Part shown: positions 10,462 to 63,528 of the stretch, one piece after another
Position numbering within the stretch: the stretch's first letter is position 1
How the letters are laid out: each line of letters starts with the position of its first letter
Assembly: GCA_026770705.1 (NCBI GenBank)
Contig: JANJGN010000071.1
Coordinates: 1,116,001-1,180,000, forward strand
Direction of reading: 5' to 3'
Length of the DNA stretch: 64,000 nt
Source: Isurus oxyrinchus
Lineage: Eukaryota
Made by a program: the position numbers and the translations under genes
The notes under the pieces: model-generated
Seen by the model: only the letters and a program-made list of their open reading frames with translations
What the model was told of the DNA's origin: nothing
Database searches by the model: none

Positions 10462-11083
10462 GTGTTATCACTTGGCAGGTGATGTGTGCCAGGCAGACCA
10501 AGTCCTTGAGAGAAACCTGGTCACACTATCATAATGATTTTGCAATTTGTATTTATTATGAGATGTGTGCACTTAATTCAGAAGCAATAACTCCACCAAT
10601 ACCTTTAGAGATTTAAAACAATAAATTAACATATTTGTCATCAAAATAAAAGATTTCAAGCACATACATAACTACAATTACTGCTATCATAACTCCTAAA
10701 ATTCCTAATTAACCTGACTCCCAGTCACACTCCCTTTAAGGCAACAGACCAAAAATAAATGTTGGATTTAAAACAAAATCAGCAAGTTAACCCAATGCCC
10801 CGGACAGTGGAATTCCAAATGCATTGTCCCCAACTTCAGTTCTGTTGGAGAACAGGCTTCTGTACAAACAGGGTCCTGAGGACCATGAACCAATGTAGAA
10901 TGAACTTTTCCGCTTTTGTGTCCAGGATTCTCTTCCATCTGGTGTGATACCTTGTGGAGTTCATTGTGTGTCCTATAGATGGTCCACACTGCAGCCACTG
11001 TGCCCGAGTGATGGAGGAGGTGGATATCGAGTCTAGTGGATCAACAAAACATCCAGATTAAATATTGATATTTCTCTCCCCAG

Positions 11084-11461
11084 TTGGATTGTCACAAGAG
11101 TGGAAAGGTGACACTCCACGAGAGGTGACAGCGCAGGAAGGTTCGTGTGTACAGATTCCATGTCATTACAGTTATCCATCAGATTTGGTAAAGAAACCAC
11201 AGGTCGGAATCTGGAAAATGAGAAGATACATACGGAACAAATGGTCTAAATGGTCTATAGCCTTTCACTCCAAGGGTCACAGTCGCGAGTTATCACAGTT
11301 CCACCATCGGACCCGGCTGTCTGGAGACCTGAAAGATGGCGACTGTTCCCTGATTATAAACAACATCAGATGGGAAGATGCAGGACCTTATTTTTTCACG
11401 ATAAAATTTGGCAATCGTCCGAGCCATAACTATTACCCTGAAACCCAGCTTCACGTTTCTG
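11084..11461 (+). CDS. Gene B V-set exon 1 (Siglec-type; essential Arg replaced by Thr)
   Basis: ccccag| acceptor and G|GTAAGT donor, phase 1/1, open frame; motifs GSCVQIPC and GDLKDGDCSLII; F strand YFFTIK (ACG at 11398). Confidence 0.85.
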
Positions 11462-11629
11462 GTAAGTGCTGTGTTATAATTACTCAACAATTCACATCCA
11501 ACACTCAATGGGAAATAATAGTGTTTGATTTGCTTGTTTTTTGGCCGTGTTAACCAGCGTCACTATTTTTAATGATTTGCCTATTTCTGCTCCCAGATCC
11601 ATGAGCTTATTGTGTCTGATTGAATCCAC

Positions 11630-14535: not shown

Positions 14536-14650
14536 TTTGTTGCCATTTTCCTCAGTATTGACCATCCCCCCAATTCAGCCTCATCTGTAAATTTGAGTCT
14601 AGTGGATCCACAAACCATCCAGAGTTAAATATTGATATTTCTCTCCCCAG

Positions 14651-15019
14651 CTGAACCCTCACAAGAGTGGAAAGGTGACACTCCACGAGAGGTGACAGCG
14701 CAGGAAGGTTCGTGTGTACAGATTCCATGTCATTACAGTTATCCATCGTGTCTGGAAAACCAAACGCGAGGTGGAGTCTGGTTTAATAATGAGGAACAGA
14801 TTCCCTGGGCTCCCATTGCCTTTCACTCCAAGGATCACAGTCACGAGTTACCACGGTTCCACCATCGGACCCGGCTGTCTGGAGACCTGAAAGATGGCGA
14901 CTGTTCCCTGATTATAAACAACATCAGACGGGAAGATGCAGGACCTTATTATTTCAGGATAGAATTTGGCAATGGTCCGAGCCATAACTATTACCCTGTA
15001 ACCCAGCTTCACGTTTCTG
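14651..15019 (+). CDS. Gene B V-set exon 2 (Siglec-type; essential Arg retained)
   Basis: Phase 1/1 splice sites; GSCVQIPCHYSYP...GDCSLIINNIRREDAGPYYFRIEF; Arg codon AGG at 14956-14958. Confidence 0.9.
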
Positions 15020-15832
15020 GTAAGTGCTGTGTTATAATTACTCAACAATTCACATCCAACACTCAATGGGAAATAACACAAACTGTGACGTTTACATATT
15101 AACACAAAACACAGCTTATTATAACACACTGTCTGATTCTCAATAACCTGCTAATAGCTTCCAGTTCAGTCCTAAAACAACCTCTAATACTCACTTTAAT
15201 ATCAATGATTAAATGTATTGACTGTGTCCATCAATGTTATCAGGTTATCCACTTACATCAATCTCCCTAATCCTGTTTAAAATTCTTACATATCAACAAA
15301 AGAAAGATTTGCATTTCTATAGCGCCTTTCACCACCTCTGGACGTCGCAAATGGATTCACAACCATTGAAATAATTCTTGAAATGTAGCCCTTGTTGTAA
15401 TATAGGAAACACAGCAGCCAATTTGTGCACAGGAAGCTCCCAGAAACAGCAATGTGATCAATAACCTGATCGTCTGCTTTAAATGCCTGTTCAGTGATTG
15501 GTTCAAATGGTTTCTCTCCTGGTGGCGACAGGATAGAATTTAAATCTGGCAGATTTCAGAGAAAGTAACAAGCCAGTGTGTCAGGAACTGTGAGCTGCTC
15601 CCCCGCCCTCACCTGGGATTGTCAATTCAATTGTCTCAAAGTGGAAGTGAATTCATCTGAGAGACAGAAAGTCCACTAAGTCTGAAAATAGGAAATTCTC
15701 TCCTGATCATTGTAACCTCTCAGATCTGATATCATCCTTGTAAAAGTGCTTTCTCTTGTGGGACTGTGATTTCTATTTGAACTGATGCTTCACGTTATAT
15801 TTCTCTAAAAGGATCCATTCCCTGTCTGTTAG

Positions 15833-50316: not shown

Positions 50317-51590
50317 GTAGGTGGAAATTCATTCCTTATTTTAAGGTTTCTCCCTGCTCGTTTCTTCCACAGAAAGTTTTCTGATTTCAAGCTGATTTCA
50401 GTGGCAGTCTGTCTCGGTTATACTCAGGAGGCATGTTTGAAATCGAGCCCCCCCCCCCACCCTTTTTTTGCAAAGCTGGGAAGAGACAATTCCAAGGAAG
50501 TGAACATATCCCCACAGGAATTTTAAATGTAACCCACGCCGGGAATAGTGAGAGGGAGACTGATCCAGCCTGGGAGTGGGTTAAAGAGAGGCTGGGAGTC
50601 GAGAGTCGGAGAGAGGGATGGAATGGGGGAGGGAGGGATTGGAAGAGAGAGACACAGAGTGGGACGGGGAGGGGTGAAAGGGAAAGAACATAGGTGGGAG
50701 AGAGTGACAGAGGGAGAAATTAAAGAAGAGATGCAGAGTGAGGGAAAGTGAAAAGGGAAGAGAGATTGTCCAAGAGAGAGAAATTAACAGGGAAGGGAGA
50801 GTTACAGAGTGAGCGAAAGGTACAAAAATAGTGTGAGAGAGAGGGAGAGATACAGAGTGGGAGAAGGAGACAGGGGAGAGAGAGGGAGAGAGACAGGAAA
50901 AGGGAGAGAGGAGAGAAAGATTGGGAGAGAGGGCAATTGAGAGGAAGAGTAGGAGAGAGAGAGACAGGGAGAGGAGGAGTGGAAGAGAGGAAGAGAGAGA
51001 GAGATATGGAGCAGGAGAACACCTTCTCCGGTCCCGATGTTCCTCCAAAATCTCTGACATTACTGCATCTCCCGGGACCCCCTGATTCCCATCGCTCCAC
51101 CATTGGTGGCCGTGCCTTCATCTGCCTGGGGCCCTGAGCTCCGGAATACCCTCCCTTAACCTCTCTGCCTCTCTCTCTCTCTCTCCTTTAAGACGCTCCT
51201 TAAAAACTGACATCTTTGACCAAGCTTTTGGTCACCTATCCCTAATATCTCCATATGTGACTCCGTGTTAGACTTCTCTCTGATTTACGCTCCGGTAATG
51301 TGGGCTGGGACATTTTGCAATGTCAGAGGCGCTGTGTAAATGCAAGTTGTGAGTGTTATGTGGAAGGGAGACCCCAGGCGGCAGTCAGTGCCAGAGACTG
51401 GAGTCATTGTGCGCAGACCGTATCTAATCTCTCCGAATGCACAATCGGTTTGACTGTCAGCCAAAGCACTTTTGATATTTGATCCTTCTACCTGTTTATA
51501 ACCAGGCCTACATCATACACCGAGAGGCTGGTTAATCAACAGACACCTTAGAGGATCGAGTGAAAGACAAACAGGACTTGCATTTCTCTA

Positions 51591-51739
51591 TAAAAACAAA
51601 GAAAACTGCGGATGCTGGAAATCCAAAACAAAAACAGAATTACCTGAAAAAACTCAGCAGGTCTGGCAGCATCGGCGGAGAAGAAAAGAGTTGACGTTTC
51701 GAGTCCTCAGAAGGGTCATGAGGACTCGAAACGTCAACT
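51591..51739. mobile_element. Short Penelope-derived insertion with hairpin and target-site duplication
   Basis: cttgcatttctcta at 51577-51590 and 51740-51753; 24-bp perfect inverted repeat 51686-51709/51719-51742; related copies ~58665, ~42600, ~22480. Confidence 0.7.
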
Positions 51740-52714
51740 CTTGCATTTCTCTAGCGCTTTCCAACACATCATGACGTCCCAAACTGTTTCGCGGACAATC
51801 AAGTGCTTTTTTTCTTTCATGTGAGGTCACTGATGTACTGTGGGAAAAGAATCAGCCATTGGCGCACTGTAAGATCCCACAGACAGCAGCATGATAATAA
51901 CCAGCGCACTCCCAGTACTTGCACTGCAAGTGTCAGTTCAGGGTGTCTGCTCGATTCTCTGCAACTCTCAGCTCTGAGTTAAAAGGACCACCAGGCGTAA
52001 TTGAGAAATTACCGAGCTGTCGGAGGGTCAGTACCGGCGGGGGGGCAGGACAGTCGGAGGGTCAGTACTGAGGGGGTGCTGCATTGTCAGACGGTCAGTT
52101 TTGGAGTGCTGCACTGCCAGAGGGTCAGTACCGGCAGGGGACTGCACAGTCGGAGGGTCAGTACTGAGGGGGTGCTGCATTGTCAGACGGTCAGTACTGA
52201 GGGAGTGCTGCACAGTCGGAGGGTCAGTACTGAGGGGGTGCTGCACTGTTGAAGGCGCTGTCTTTCAGATGAGATGTTAAACTGAGACAACATCTGCCCT
52301 CTCAGATGGATGTAGAGGATTCCATGGCCACAATTTAAATGAAGTGTTTCAGGAGTTGGGTGTATGTGTGGAGGGGGTGGTGCGGGGTGGATGGGATGCA
52401 GTTATGTCCGCTTTCCTGGGGCAAACATTTATCCCTCAACTGACTTTGGTAAAAAACTGAAAATCGGGGCCATTATCACATTTCTGTTTGTGGGATCTTG
52501 CTGTGCGTGAATTGCCTGCTGCGTTTCCTACATTACAGCGGTGAGCTCACTTCAGAAAAAGTCCTTCCTTCAGCTGTGGAACACTTTGGGCCATCCTGAG
52601 GAGGGGAAAGGCGCTATAGAAATGCGCCATCCTCCTTCCAATGACGCGCCTGATTGAAATGATGCCTTCTTTCTTTCCGGAATGTTCTCACCTATTGTCC
52701 TCCTGCTTTTCCAG

Positions 52715-52831
52715 GGCTCCTTGCTGCAGCGCCAGAAGAGAATGGGCAGACAGCAGCTCTGCATATTCTGCTGTAACTGCTGTAATTGGAGAGAACCAAA
52801 TGAGACTTGTGGTCTCTGCTGTAGATATTAG
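52715..52831 (+). CDS. HAMP: Hepcidin-like gene exon 3 (furin site and mature 8-Cys peptide)
   Basis: Acceptor cctgcttttccag|; GSLLQRQKR-MGRQQLCIFCCNCCNWREPNETCGLCCRY*; C-x2-CC-x-CC-xn-C-G-x-CC hepcidin pattern; AATAAA at 53669. Confidence 0.88.
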   Translation, partial: GSLLQRQKRMGRQQLCIFCCNCCNWREPNETCGLCCRY

Positions 52832-53278
52832 ACCCTGGCCTCATTCACGCAAGGTCATCCTGCACCATGCCACAGCCTCTCCCCTCCTTATCTACTGCTT
52901 AGCAATCTATTTCACACAGGCCCTGTTCATTAATTCCAACTGAAACTTTACCTGCGTTTTACAGCAGGGAAAGAAGCCATTCGGCCCATCTGCTCCATGC
53001 TGGTGTTTCTGCTCCACACGAGTCTCCGCCCACCCCTTCTCCATCTCACCCCATCACCATATCCTTCTATTCATTTGTCCCTCGTGTGTTTATCCAGCTT
53101 CCCCTTAAATACATCGACACTATTCACCTCACGTGACTGTGTTTGTGTCTGTCTTTATGAGCGTGTGTGTGTGACTGTCAATATGTGTGTGTCAATGTGA
53201 ATGTGTGTGATTGTGTCAGCGTGTGTGTGTGTATGTGTGACTGTCAGTGCGTGTCAATGTGAATGTGTGTGATTGTGT

Positions 53279-53320
<42 letters not shown>

Positions 53321-55309
53321 CTGTGTCAGTGTGTGTCAATGTGAATGAGTGAGTGTGTCAGTGTGTCTGTGTGGGTGTGTGTGACTGTGTCAGTGTGTGT
53401 CAATGTGAATGAGTGAGTGTGTCAGTGTGTCTGTGTGGGTGTGGGTGTGTGAGTGTGCAAGTGAATGTGTGAGGAATCTTATGACTAAGTCATTTGAATG
53501 GATGTTACTGGGGTTAATGATAGTTAAAATTCAGAGAGATGTAAAGCGGGCTCCTGATTTTGCTGCTTTATGCTCCCGGGCACAGATTCACCCCGACAAT
53601 GTGTTCATGATTCACCATTATCTTGTCGGGACTTTAATTGTAAAGATTATGATTTGTGAAAAAAAATGAATAAACAACTTTTGTCTTCACAAAGTGTCTG
53701 GCTTGGTATTTCAGGCTACTTGTCTCTCCCTCACCCTCCCCCCCCCACCATGCCCCCCACACCAGGGAACAATTGTCCCCCCTTCCTCTGAAGTTCTGGG
53801 TAAAGATCAGCTTTGTTCAATGCAAGCTGTTCCGACATCGAGAACGTTGTTACAAATATCTCACAAAGGGCACACGCCATGATAGCCCACTTTCAACAGA
53901 TTTTACCAGTTGACCAGGTTGAAAACCTTTTCATAAACCACAACGTAGGTGTTCAATTCTTGCTGCTGTTTGCTTAATGTTCTCATAACTGCTATAACCT
54001 CTCTAGTTCCACTACATAACAACACCAACATAAATAAACAGAAGCAGGAGTAGGCCTTTTGGCCCCCCAAGCCAGCTTGTCCATTCAATTTGAACCTGGC
54101 TCCTGCTGAAAGTTATTTAAGTTGAAGCGATAAAGCCATCAGGTGCAGGGATTAAAATGTAAGCAAAGGAAAAATAATACTTAGACATGAGATTTAAAAT
54201 CAGTTTCTGTGAAGAATCATACTGAGGCCATTGCTCTGGATTCCTTCTTTCCAGAGTGAAGGGTTTAAAACTAGGAGTCACATTCAGCAGCTGCGTTGTC
54301 TTCTCTAGTTGACTATTTGGAGGTTGCCTGTAGATGTGAATCAGCAGGACAGCAGCTTTGGGGAGTGAGTGAAGGTCCCTTTTATTTACAGGATCTGCCA
54401 CAGGGTGTGCAGGAATATTCCTGCTGAATTCTCCATCCTTGCATTCATGAAGGGTTTGAAACTGGAAGTCATATTCAGCAGCTGCAATGGCCTCTGTAGC
54501 CAACTGTCTGGAGGTTGCCTGTACCGGTGGACTCAGCAGGTCAACAGCTTTGTAGGGTGGGGGACACGGGTAGTGAAGGTCCCTTTTCTTTAAAGGCTCT
54601 GCCAGTGCAACACTTGATGATCCTGGGTCAAAATCATGTATCACCTTCCCCAAAAGCACTGTGGGTGTGACCTATGGAGGGTCCTTGGCTTCGACAAGCA
54701 GCCTACCAGTTCTGCTCTCAATTCCTCTTCGCACTTGCTTCCTTCCTCCTCTGGTCTTTACTTTGTTATAGTATATGTGTCCGCTCTGCCTTTTTTGTTG
54801 CTTTCCCAATTCTTCCCACCAACTCTCTCTGGCTTGATCCTTCTCTGTGCTCATCTCATTGGTTTGGGTTTCTATCCGTTCATTGACCTGGTGTAATCTG
54901 AAACTGGTGCAATCAGGTAGGGGTGGGGGGGTTGGCGCTGGCCGTGGGTGGTGATACACGGCTACCTTTTTACCAAAATTCTTTCACGGGATGTGGACAG
55001 CGTTTGTTACCTGTTCCTGACTGACCCCTGGAGAAGGGGGTGCTGAGCTGCCTTTTCGAAGTGCTGCAGTTCGCCTGGTTTGACTGGTCTGTGGCGGGTT
55101 TTGATATAACTCAGTAGCTTGCTCGGCCATTTCAGGGGCCAGTTAAGAGTCAACCACATTGCTGTGGGTCAGGAGTCACACGTAGGCCAGAATGGGTAAG
55201 GACGGCAGGTTTCCTTCCCCAAAGGGCATTAGTGACCCAGATGGGTTTTTGCAACAATTGGCCTTAGTTTCATGGTCACCATTACAGAGACTAGCTTCGC
55301 ATTCCAGAT

Positions 55310-57270
55310 GTCACATCCAGTCGTGGACAATTAAACAACTCACTGGAGGAGGAGGCTCCACAAATATCCCCATCCTCAATGATGGAGGAGCCCAGCACAT
55401 CGGTGCAAAAGACAAGACTGAAGCATGCGCAACAATCTTCAGCCAGAAGTGCTGAGTGGCTGATCCATCTCGGCCTCCTCCGGAGGTCCCCAGCATCACA
55501 GATGCCAATCTTTAGCCAATTCGATTAATTCCACGTGACATCAAGAAAGGGCTGAAGGCACTGGATATTGCAAAGGCTCCAGGCCCTGACAATATTCTGG
55601 CAATAGTACTGAAGACTTGTGCTCCAGAACTTGCTGCGCCCCTAGCCAAGCTTTTCTGGAATTTTCTAGTACAGCTGCAACACTGGCAACTACCCGGCTA
55701 TGGGGTACGTCCTGTACACAAAAAGCAGGACAAATCCAACCCAGCCAATTCCCCAGCAGTCTATTCTTGATCATTACTAAAGTGATGGAAGGGGTCATCA
55801 ACAGCGCTTGCAAGCAGCACCTGCTTACCAAGAACCTGCTCACTGACGCTCAGTTTGTGTTCCACCAGGATCATTCAGCTCCTGGCCTCATTACAGCCTT
55901 GGTTCAAACATGCACAAATGAGCTGAACTCCAGAGGTGAGAGGGACTGCCCTTGACATCAAGGCAGCATTTGACTGAGTGTGGCAAAACAAGGAGCCCGA
56001 GCAAAACTGGAGTCAATGGGAATCGGGGGAAAACTCTCCGCTGCTTGGAGTCATACCCAGCACAAAGGACGATGGTTGTGATTATTGGGGGTCAATCATC
56101 TCAGTTCCAGGACATCACTGCAGGAGTTACTCAGGGTAGTGTCCTAGGCTCAAACATCGTCAACTGCTTCATCAATGACCTTCCTTCCATCATAAGGTCA
56201 GAAGTGGGGATGTTTGCTGATATTTGCACAATGTTCAGCACCATTCACAGCTCCTCAGATACTGAAGCAAGTTATGTCCAAATGCAGCAAGACCTGGACA
56301 ACATCCAGGCTTGGGCTGACAGGTGACAAGTAACATTCATGCCACACAAGTACCAGGCAATGACCAGCTCCAACAAGAGAGAATCTAATTGAAGGTGCAG
56401 AAAATTTGGATTTATGTTCAAGAGCCAGCCAGGACCAGCAGCTAGGGCGCCAAAGCGTACACATCCTTACGTGAAAACTTAAAAACCTGTACTAAGGGCT
56501 CAGTTGGAAATTTGCAATGAGGAAATGGGAGACACACACACAAGGACACTGGGTGACTCAATCAAGAAATGGGGAAGGTTATTTCACACCGTCCGATGGC
56601 CTTGAACCACATCCAGTCAGCCTCCGGAAACCTTTTGTATTGAACAAACATAGATTCTTTGCTGTCTCAAAAGGACAATAGCCAGTCTCTGCCCTGTAAT
56701 TACTGAACAAGAACACAATTATCAGCCCACCGGAGGATCATTGTGCTGTGGCCTTTGTCTAACTAATACCATTACCTTGTAACTGAGAGTAAAAATATAT
56801 AAACTGTGCTCATTTGAACCTCGGTGGAGAAGCACCTGGACTGCCCAGCGTTTGCTCCCCACATGCGTAATAAAGGAACCACTTGAATATTGCATCTGGA
56901 GTCCGAGTGTTGAAATTTTGTACCAGAATATTCCACAGACCATTCATAACCATCTCCCCTTGACATTCAATGGCATTACCATCAATAAATCCCCCAATAT
57001 CAACATCCTGGGAGTTACCATTGAGCAGAAACTGAACTGGACCAGCCATATAAACACTGTGGCTGCAAGAGCAGGTCAGAGGCTGGGAACCCTGCAGACA
57101 GTAACTCACCTCCTGACTCCCCAAAGCCTGTCCACCATCTACAACGCACAAGTCAGGAGTGTGATGGAATACTCTCCACATGCCTGGATGAGTGCAGCTC
57201 CAACAACACTCAAGAAGCTCGACACCATCCAGGACAAAGCAGCCCGATTGATTGGCTCCCCTTCCACAGA
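55310..57270 (+). mobile_element. LINE RT fragment (CR1-like)
   Basis: AGVTQGSVLG, FINDL, MFAD, YNAQVRSVMEYS motifs; frameshifted. Confidence 0.85.
56390..56946 (+). mobile_element. Solo LTR nested in the LINE
   Basis: TGAA...TTCA ends; TAAT/TAAC 4-bp TSD; internal TATATAAA and AATAAA; splits gagaatctaaccatc. Confidence 0.75.
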
Positions 57271-62630: not shown

Positions 62631-63154
62631 CAAGGAGGGAATCAAGAACCCCGTATGCACAATTACCAACAGAAAGTGAACAACAATTTATACTTAATGG
62701 GAAGACAGTGCTGATTGGTTGGCAAGTGGTCTCTGATAGGTGGAGGTGTTGCCGTGGAGAATGGTGTGTGCGAGATGTAAAGTTTAGACAGCTTGTCTCT
62801 TCATTCAGCAATAATCAAATAAAGATCAATTAACTTCTATCGACTGTGAAGCATTTTGAGAGGCCTTAGAATGTGGATACTGAGAATGAGCTGCACTGTC
62901 AGAGGGTCAGCGCTGAGGGAGTGCTGATGTAGAATGAAAGATGTCGGTACAGTTAATGCTTTTCATCATTGATATTAAAGTGATTTTTAGAGGGTGCTTT
63001 AGGACTGAACTGGAAGCTATCACCAGGTTATTGAGAATCAGACAGTGTGTTATAATAAGCTGTGTTTTGTGTTATTATGTAAACGTCACAGTTTGTGTTA
63101 TTTCCCATTGAGTGTTGGATGTGAATTGTTGAGTAATTATAACACAGCACTTAC

Positions 63155-63528
63155 CAGAAACGTGAAGCTGGGTTACAGGATAGTAGCTGTAACTATTCCT
63201 GCTGTCAAACTCTATTCTGAAAAAATAAGGTCCTGCATCTTCCCGTCTGATGTTGTTTATAATCAGGGAACAGTCGCCATCTTTCAGGTCTCCAGACAGC
63301 CGGGTACGATGGCGGAATCTTTGATCCCTGTGATTGTGACCCTCGGAGTGAAAGGCTATAGACCATTTAGGCTGTGGGTTCCCATCTATTCCTTTCAACC
63401 AGATTCTGCACGTGATCTCCCTACGAAATTTGATAAGTAACTGTAATGACATGGAATCTGTACACATGAACCTTCCTGTGCTGTCACCTCTCATGGAGTG
63501 TCACCTTTCCACTCTTGTGACAGTCCAA
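63155..63528 (-). pseudogene. Gene D Siglec-type V-set exon with nonsense and frameshift mutations
   Basis: CGA>TGA at 63491-63493; 1-nt deletion before the C-strand Trp; retains YFFRIEF and both splice sites. Confidence 0.85.

Follow-up and report, generated by a model that had tools for sequence, protein, structure and literature searches.

What does a short, cysteine-rich reading frame in a shark genome encode and, if it belongs to a hepcidin gene, is its product the iron hormone or a different secreted peptide? The frame lies on the plus strand at 52715–52831 of the 64-kb stretch of DNA that we analyzed (hereafter the window), where a reading made from the sequence alone had proposed an atypical hepcidin-like peptide. 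Translated from 52715, it gives GSLLQRQKR, then MGRQQLCIFCCNCCNWREPNETCGLCCRY, and then a stop codon at 52829–52831 (complete plus-strand reading, GSLLQRQKRMGRQQLCIFCCNCCNWREPNETCGLCCRY), and it is preceded by a polypyrimidine tract and the splice acceptor ttttccag. Within it are the furin site RQKR (52730–52741), a mature peptide of 29 amino acids with eight cysteines spaced C-x2-CC-x-CC-x8-C-x2-CC (52742–52828; computed mass 3448 Da when reduced) and an NET sequon (52799–52807), all on the plus strand. Both the peptide that follows RQKR and the sequon are exactly as the sequence-only reading described them, although in a peptide with four Asn the sequon is not remarkable and is insignificant by itself.

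Comparison with profiles and solved structures identifies the family. The Pfam Hepcidin profile (PF06446) matches the 38-amino-acid product of this exon with a score of 31.5 bits (E = 2.2e-7), above the curated gathering score of 27, and the match spans residues 5–37 (33 residues), which correspond to profile positions 24–52 of 53 (29 positions). The family assignment that had been made from the letters alone, and the profile search that had been proposed as its check, thus both come out in favor of hepcidin. The only solved structures that match the exon product are human hepcidin-25 and hepcidin-20 and bass hepcidin. In the alignment to human hepcidin (1m4f), all eight cysteines are in register and a gap of four residues lies opposite NWREPNET; the alignment to bass hepcidin (1s6w) also has 8/8 cysteines in register, with a loop gap of similar size. 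The four extra loop residues bear out the earlier observation that the turn has eight residues rather than four, and we refer to genes and peptides of this kind as the long-loop type. The match to hepcidin lies far beyond chance, and across the six frames of the 64-kb window the cysteine pattern occurs once.

Two protein searches returned nothing of use. When the peptide of exon 3 was compared exhaustively with 1.84 billion representative proteins by phmmer, only three repetitive junk proteins were found, a 38-amino-acid query being too short to reach significance in a collection of such size. A word-indexed search (frame 52658–52828, residues 18–57, against proteins of 31–100 amino acids) found no candidate with three shared 5-mers, a result that has little bearing on distant hepcidins. 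Similarly, AlphaFold2, when run on the 38-amino-acid exon product without an alignment, predicted helices with a pLDDT of 65, an implausible fold for a disulfide hairpin.

Could this be a chance cysteine-rich frame in non-coding DNA? The surrounding region is repeat-rich and the in-frame ORF is short. Because this ORF extends for only 49 amino acids from its first ATG, the exon is absent from an ORF list drawn at 60 amino acids, which accounts for the remark in the sequence-only reading that the peptide is invisible to the ORF track. These features would fit a chance frame, but the Pfam score exceeds the curated cut-off, the acceptor, furin site and stop codon are all correctly placed, and there are RNA contigs that are spliced and polyadenylated (described below). 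The Pfam Hepcidin match and the spliced, polyadenylated RNA together refute a chance, non-gene reading, to which we assign only a vanishingly small probability. Based on its sequence, the Pfam match, the structural alignments and the RNA joint, the segment at 52715–52831, which comprises the end of a pro-region, RQKR, the mature peptide and the stop codon, is the final exon of a real hepcidin-family gene with three exons.

We read and searched the model of this gene exon by exon. A TATA box (TATAAG, 48063–48068) is followed by a jump in RNA contig depth between the bins 47900–48095 and 48096–48291, which fits a transcription start near 48090–48100. The coding part of exon 1 (48140–48232; 31 codons, phase 0; MGSSQMKWRLVLFTLTLLLSLQLSHFFSLSR), which is defined by its translation and an RNA joint, begins at an ATG at 48140 in a good Kozak context (gcagagATGG), and its translation contains the hydrophobic signal-peptide core WRLVLFTLTLLLSL. 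Exon 2 (50260–50316; 19 codons; VDTASGSSTIEKSVDSPDT) encodes pro-region and has RNA joints on both sides. Counted by exon, the prepropeptide has 31 + 19 + 38 = 88 residues, a normal size for hepcidin. The 3′ UTR (52832–53693), which is delimited by sequence and RNA contigs, contains a TG-rich microsatellite (53138–53457) and the signal AATAAA (53669–53674). The TATA box, exons, UTR and AATAAA are all on the plus strand. A self-BLAST of the promoter and of each exon against the 64-kb window revealed no second copy or fragment.

Repeats make up much of the intervening sequence. Intron 1 contains a tandem array of 29 copies of a 37-bp unit (CTCCCTATCTCTGTAACCTCCTCCAGCCCCTACAACC) at 48434–49511, which fills half of the intron, and SINE-like repeats of 33/98 bp are found after this array (49574–49846) and at 52017–52249.

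To identify transcripts, we searched public runs with 52700–53700 and placed the contig sets X1, X2, X3 and X5 on 47900–53750. Four small contig sets from one sample of organism A contain 60–84% of the sampled 31-mers of 52700–53700. As X1 contains 84% of these 31-mers, which is nearly everything outside the microsatellite, the exact long-loop coding sequence is therefore present in RNA contigs. X1–X3 come from one sample of one study, so that they count as a single independent observation, and X5, which belongs to a different study, barely covers the hepcidin exons. The designation of the X1–X3 runs as RNA was an automated guess, and we take them to be RNA because they contain splice joints and poly(A) and because their depth differs between exons and introns. 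Word depth is 1e5–7e5 in the exon bins and 1e1–1e3 in most intron bins, such that exon bins are 100–1000 times deeper, and it stays high to 53750 except across the microsatellite.

The contigs also define the ends of the exons. The splice from 50316 to 52715 that had been predicted from the sequence is present in X1 and X2 as a joint of 50315→52714 (with the cut at +1, 50316→52715) with GT..AG borders. Exons 1 and 2 are joined as 48231→50259 with one ambiguous letter, which is equivalent to 48232→50260, and this RNA joint gives an open frame across the three exons. At the 3′ end, an X2 contig has a loose end of 12 A after 53693, 19 nt past AATAAA. These data show that, in one public sample, the long-loop type of hepcidin gene gives rise to a spliced, polyadenylated and abundant message. 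By its Pfam match, the order of its cysteines, the layout of its prepropeptide and its three exons spliced in RNA, the gene is a hepcidin gene.

Several further features of the transcripts were observed. A second form of the exon 2–exon 3 joint, which is equally deep, has T for C at 50315 (joint 50314→52714, with 'T' between). Position 50315 is part of a CpG, and the codon concerned, the last of exon 2, is either ACG (Thr) or ATG (Met); the two forms may represent alleles or a difference between copies. A minor cassette exon of 155 nt (51506–51660, plus strand; joints 50315→51505 and 51657→52712, both GT..AG) lies in a repeat in intron 2; it reaches a few percent of the depth of the main joint and would break the frame. 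The segment 51428–51819 is deeply covered in all runs, and since this includes a run without hepcidin, it is a repeat that is also transcribed elsewhere. Finally, large DNA run sets from organism B contain 36–38% of the 31-mers sampled from exon 3 and the UTR, which implies that organism B is a close relative whose locus is nearly identical.

Is this locus the only source of the message? Variants in the RNA contigs directly show that the hepcidin gene has sister copies. At the exon 1–exon 2 joint, AGG is changed to CGG or TGG; a variant exon 2 appears as a loose end at 50275 with GCGGTT for GCTTCA; and UTR contigs diverge from the window at 52950 and 53080. One of the variants concerns the mature peptide itself. 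An X1 contig tracks the window through AAGAGAATG (52744) and then diverges as AGCCACCTCTCGATCTGCATGTACTGCTGT, reading AGC CAC CTC TCG ATC TGC ATG TAC TGC TGT, which gives KR followed by M-SHLSICMYCC. This peptide shares its xSHLSxC N terminus, in which the third residue is His, with the conventional hepcidins of fish and amphibians. The conventional-type paralogue is read from the 38-letter loose end of this one contig, and there is also an X2 contig that joins 52744→52828, the letters between not being known. We regard this as thin evidence that the animal that expresses the long-loop type also expresses a conventional-type hepcidin, which the window does not encode. The presence of two types of mature peptide between near-identical pro-region and 3′ flanks suggests either that the peptide segment has diversified like a cassette or that the flanks have undergone gene conversion.

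If sister copies are transcribed, does the copy in the window contribute? Its intron 1 begins with TT (48233–48234, plus strand) instead of a GT donor, as is apparent from both the sequence and the RNA joint. The boundary of exon 1 and intron 1 reads tcgagg/TTAAGC where GTAAGC is expected, and the exon 1–exon 2 joint was recorded as 'GT..CA, both 1', which is equivalent to TT..AG. The acceptor of intron 1 is strong (ttctttctttttgcag/G at 50260), and because an ungapped contig at 50035–50271 (record 18) confirms the acceptor side letter for letter, the discrepancy lies at the donor. Use of a neighboring donor, GAG/GTTAAG at 48231 (GT at 48232–48233), together with the acceptor at 50260 was considered and rejected, as exon 1 would then end in phase 2 and exon 3 would be out of the hepcidin frame. 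The RNA joint carries one more G than this shifted-GT model, which places the end of exon 1 at 48232 (phase 0), and with this end all three exons are in frame.

If the G-to-T change is real, transcription of this copy would be expected to result in a read-through product of 33 amino acids or, via the shifted GT, in a frameshift. Contigs placed at ≥95% identity are not assignable to one hepcidin copy and, since the first donor in the window reads TT, the RNA joint may stem from sister copies. We consider it probable that this copy is unproductive because of its TT donor; none of its transcripts would then be spliced correctly, and the RNA would come from intact sister copies.

An alternative, for which the odds are clearly lower, is that the T at 48233 arose as an error of sequencing or assembly or represents a rare allele, in which case the copy would be intact and productive and the locus would contribute to the abundant mRNA. 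Its TATA box, Kozak ATG, three open exons, intron 1 acceptor, both intron 2 splice sites and AATAAA are all sound. In addition, intron-containing contigs match the window without a difference (for example, X2 record 16, at 52479–52743, and X3 records 22 and 23), but such perfectly matching contigs may derive from identical duplicates. The shifted-GT joint, 48231→50260, is absent among the best-supported joints listed, as an intact donor would predict; however, the difference is a base substitution, and assembly errors of this kind are rarer than slips in homopolymer length. We continue to favor an unproductive copy.

Whichever copies are productive, how does the long-loop type compare with known hepcidins? 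As in vertebrate HAMP (PF06446; human hepcidin-25, 1m4f/6wbv), there are three exons with the mature peptide on exon 3, and the precursor consists of a signal peptide, a pro-region and an RX(K/R)R motif directly before the mature peptide. The eight cysteines are in register, six residues precede the first Cys, the C-I-F-C-C core is the same, and the gene adjoins Siglec genes of the MAG/CD22 type. The differences are concentrated in the mature peptide. From the second CC pair to the sixth Cys, the loop has eight residues (NWREPNET) where human hepcidin has four (HRSK), and across known hepcidins the hairpin loop has 4–5 residues. Unlike vertebrate HAMP, the long-loop peptide has an N-E-T sequon in this loop, and the long-loop gene is multi-copy in this genome. 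Its N terminus is MGRQQL, whereas that of human hepcidin is DTHFPI, and it has neither His3 nor Phe4, in agreement with the statement in the sequence-only reading that the hormone-type N terminus is missing.

The genomic neighborhood is also reminiscent of HAMP. Pfam identifies V-set/Ig_CD22-like exons, which encode the N-terminal domain of Siglecs, at 11065–11550 and 14632–15099 (both plus strand) and at 63075–63491 (minus strand), such that the hepcidin copy is flanked on both sides by Siglec-type genes in opposite orientations. In humans, the gene order is USF2-HAMP-MAG-CD22, and the V-set/Ig_CD22 flanks recall this mammalian HAMP-MAG-CD22 neighborhood. Remains of retroelements also lie between the genes, as fragments of reverse transcriptase (RVT_1) are present at 32800–33420 and 55952–56323, both on the plus strand.

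Is the long-loop peptide an iron hormone? The N-terminal residues that matter for hormone action are known from general work on hepcidin and partly also from PMC8235187. Iron hormones begin with DTHFPI or QSHLSL, in which residue 3 is His and residue 4 is aromatic or hydrophobic. MGRQQL fails to conform to this pattern: R3-Q4-Q5 stand in for H-F-P or H-L-S, followed by L6-C7-I8-F9, which are kept. When hepcidin is bound to ferroportin, its N and C termini are buried, and its loop, which varies, is extracellular (PMC8235187). Because of this arrangement, the long loop is only weak evidence concerning ferroportin, and the divergent N terminus is the relevant change.

Since L6-C7-I8-F9 of the binding segment are retained, it is conceivable that the long-loop peptide still binds ferroportin and regulates iron, either as the shark form of the hormone or as one of several, with the N-terminal change tolerated. 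The peptide has six residues before its first Cys, as do the human and teleost hormones; its gene is placed as mammalian HAMP is, beside MAG/CD22-type Siglec genes; its transcripts are abundant; and the loop that sets it apart is of the part that varies and lies outside the complex (PMC8235187). However, R-Q-Q at positions 3–5 leaves the peptide without an X-X-His metal site and without an aromatic residue at position 4, and a conventional SHLSIC-type message is found in the same animal. We consider it unlikely that the long-loop type retains activity on ferroportin.

The promoter adds little to the case for a hormone. A motif scan identified GGCGCCAGAC, a hexamer like a BMP-responsive element plus AGAC, at 47921–47930 on the plus strand, ∼170 bp upstream of the likely transcription start. 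We assume that it recalls the BMP-responsive element and SMAD box of HAMP promoters, and its presence would fit iron regulation. However, it contains the single GGCGCC in the 840 bp scanned, for which ∼0.2 are expected by chance, or about one per five such regions. As a putative promoter element, this single match is a weak lead that could easily be due to chance.

Another possibility is that the peptide corresponds to the HAMP2 type. In teleosts, HAMP2 designates second hepcidin genes, which are often multi-copy, are regarded as antimicrobial and usually encode cationic peptides. As with HAMP2, there is a diverged type beside a conventional, QSHLS-like type, the hormone N terminus has been lost, there are several copies, and it is chiefly the mature peptide that varies, the flanks being conserved. 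The long-loop type differs from HAMP2 in that its loop is much longer and its peptide is nearly neutral, with a computed charge of +0.4 at pH 7 and a pI of 7.5. This near-neutral charge argues against a classical cationic, membrane-active peptide, to which the long-loop peptide would bear little resemblance. Thus, of the earlier suggestion of a HAMP2-like antimicrobial variant, the idea of a second type is in keeping with the xSHLSxC transcript in the same animal, and the antimicrobial part is disfavored by the charge and pI. For the origin of the long-loop type, we consider independent duplication in cartilaginous fish more likely than orthology with HAMP2.

Because the long-loop type lacks the hormone N terminus and a conventional-type message coexists with it, we favor a sister peptide over the iron hormone, and the coexisting conventional type in particular favors a HAMP2-like sister role. 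By this account, the stretch at 52715–52831 is exon 3, which encodes the peptide, in one copy of a multi-copy gene of the hepcidin family that has three exons and is located among Siglec genes of the CD22/MAG type. Exon 1 would supply the signal peptide, and exon 2 and the start of exon 3 would supply a short pro-region. By analogy with other members of the family, the signal peptide would be removed co-translationally, a furin-type protease would cleave after RQKR, four disulfides would form the hairpin, and the 29-mer would be secreted. The long-loop type would thus be a secreted sister peptide, HAMP2-like, that functions in defense or in another role that does not involve ferroportin. We think a non-ferroportin role of this kind, in defense or otherwise, somewhat better supported than not. 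To the explanation as a whole, in which the long-loop gene encodes a secreted sister peptide and the copy in the window is unproductive, we give a probability of roughly 0.6.

A more speculative scheme is raised by the report of a second ferroportin without an equivalent of the C326 cysteine (PMC8235187). Cartilaginous fish could have two hepcidin-ferroportin pairs, with the SHLSIC type acting on the ferroportin that carries the C326 thiol and the MGRQQL family on the ferroportin that lacks this cysteine. We consider this very improbable. If true, it would represent a second peptide-controlled axis of metal export at the root of the jawed vertebrates.

The papers that we could search describe neither a hepcidin family in sharks nor an eight-residue loop or these peptide motifs. 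Those that touch on hepcidin in sharks or cartilaginous fish consisted of a remark on ferroportin C326 in a review and a plasma proteome of the nurse shark in which hepcidin is listed, and the hepcidin families of cartilaginous fish are almost undescribed in this searchable literature. The long-loop gene is a real and moderately interesting variant of a known family. The copy in the window contributes a caveat about splice sites and no new principle; it is the picture at the level of the family that merits study. Our analysis holds two lessons for annotation, as ORF-based tracks miss genes of this kind and splice sites need to be checked copy by copy before the copies are counted as functional. 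The interleaving of this hepcidin family with Siglec genes raises the possibility that a hormone gene was recruited into a rapidly duplicating cluster of immune genes. Finally, one shark that has both a conventional hepcidin and an abundant, multi-copy long-loop type would provide a natural experiment on which parts of the peptide are needed for the control of iron.
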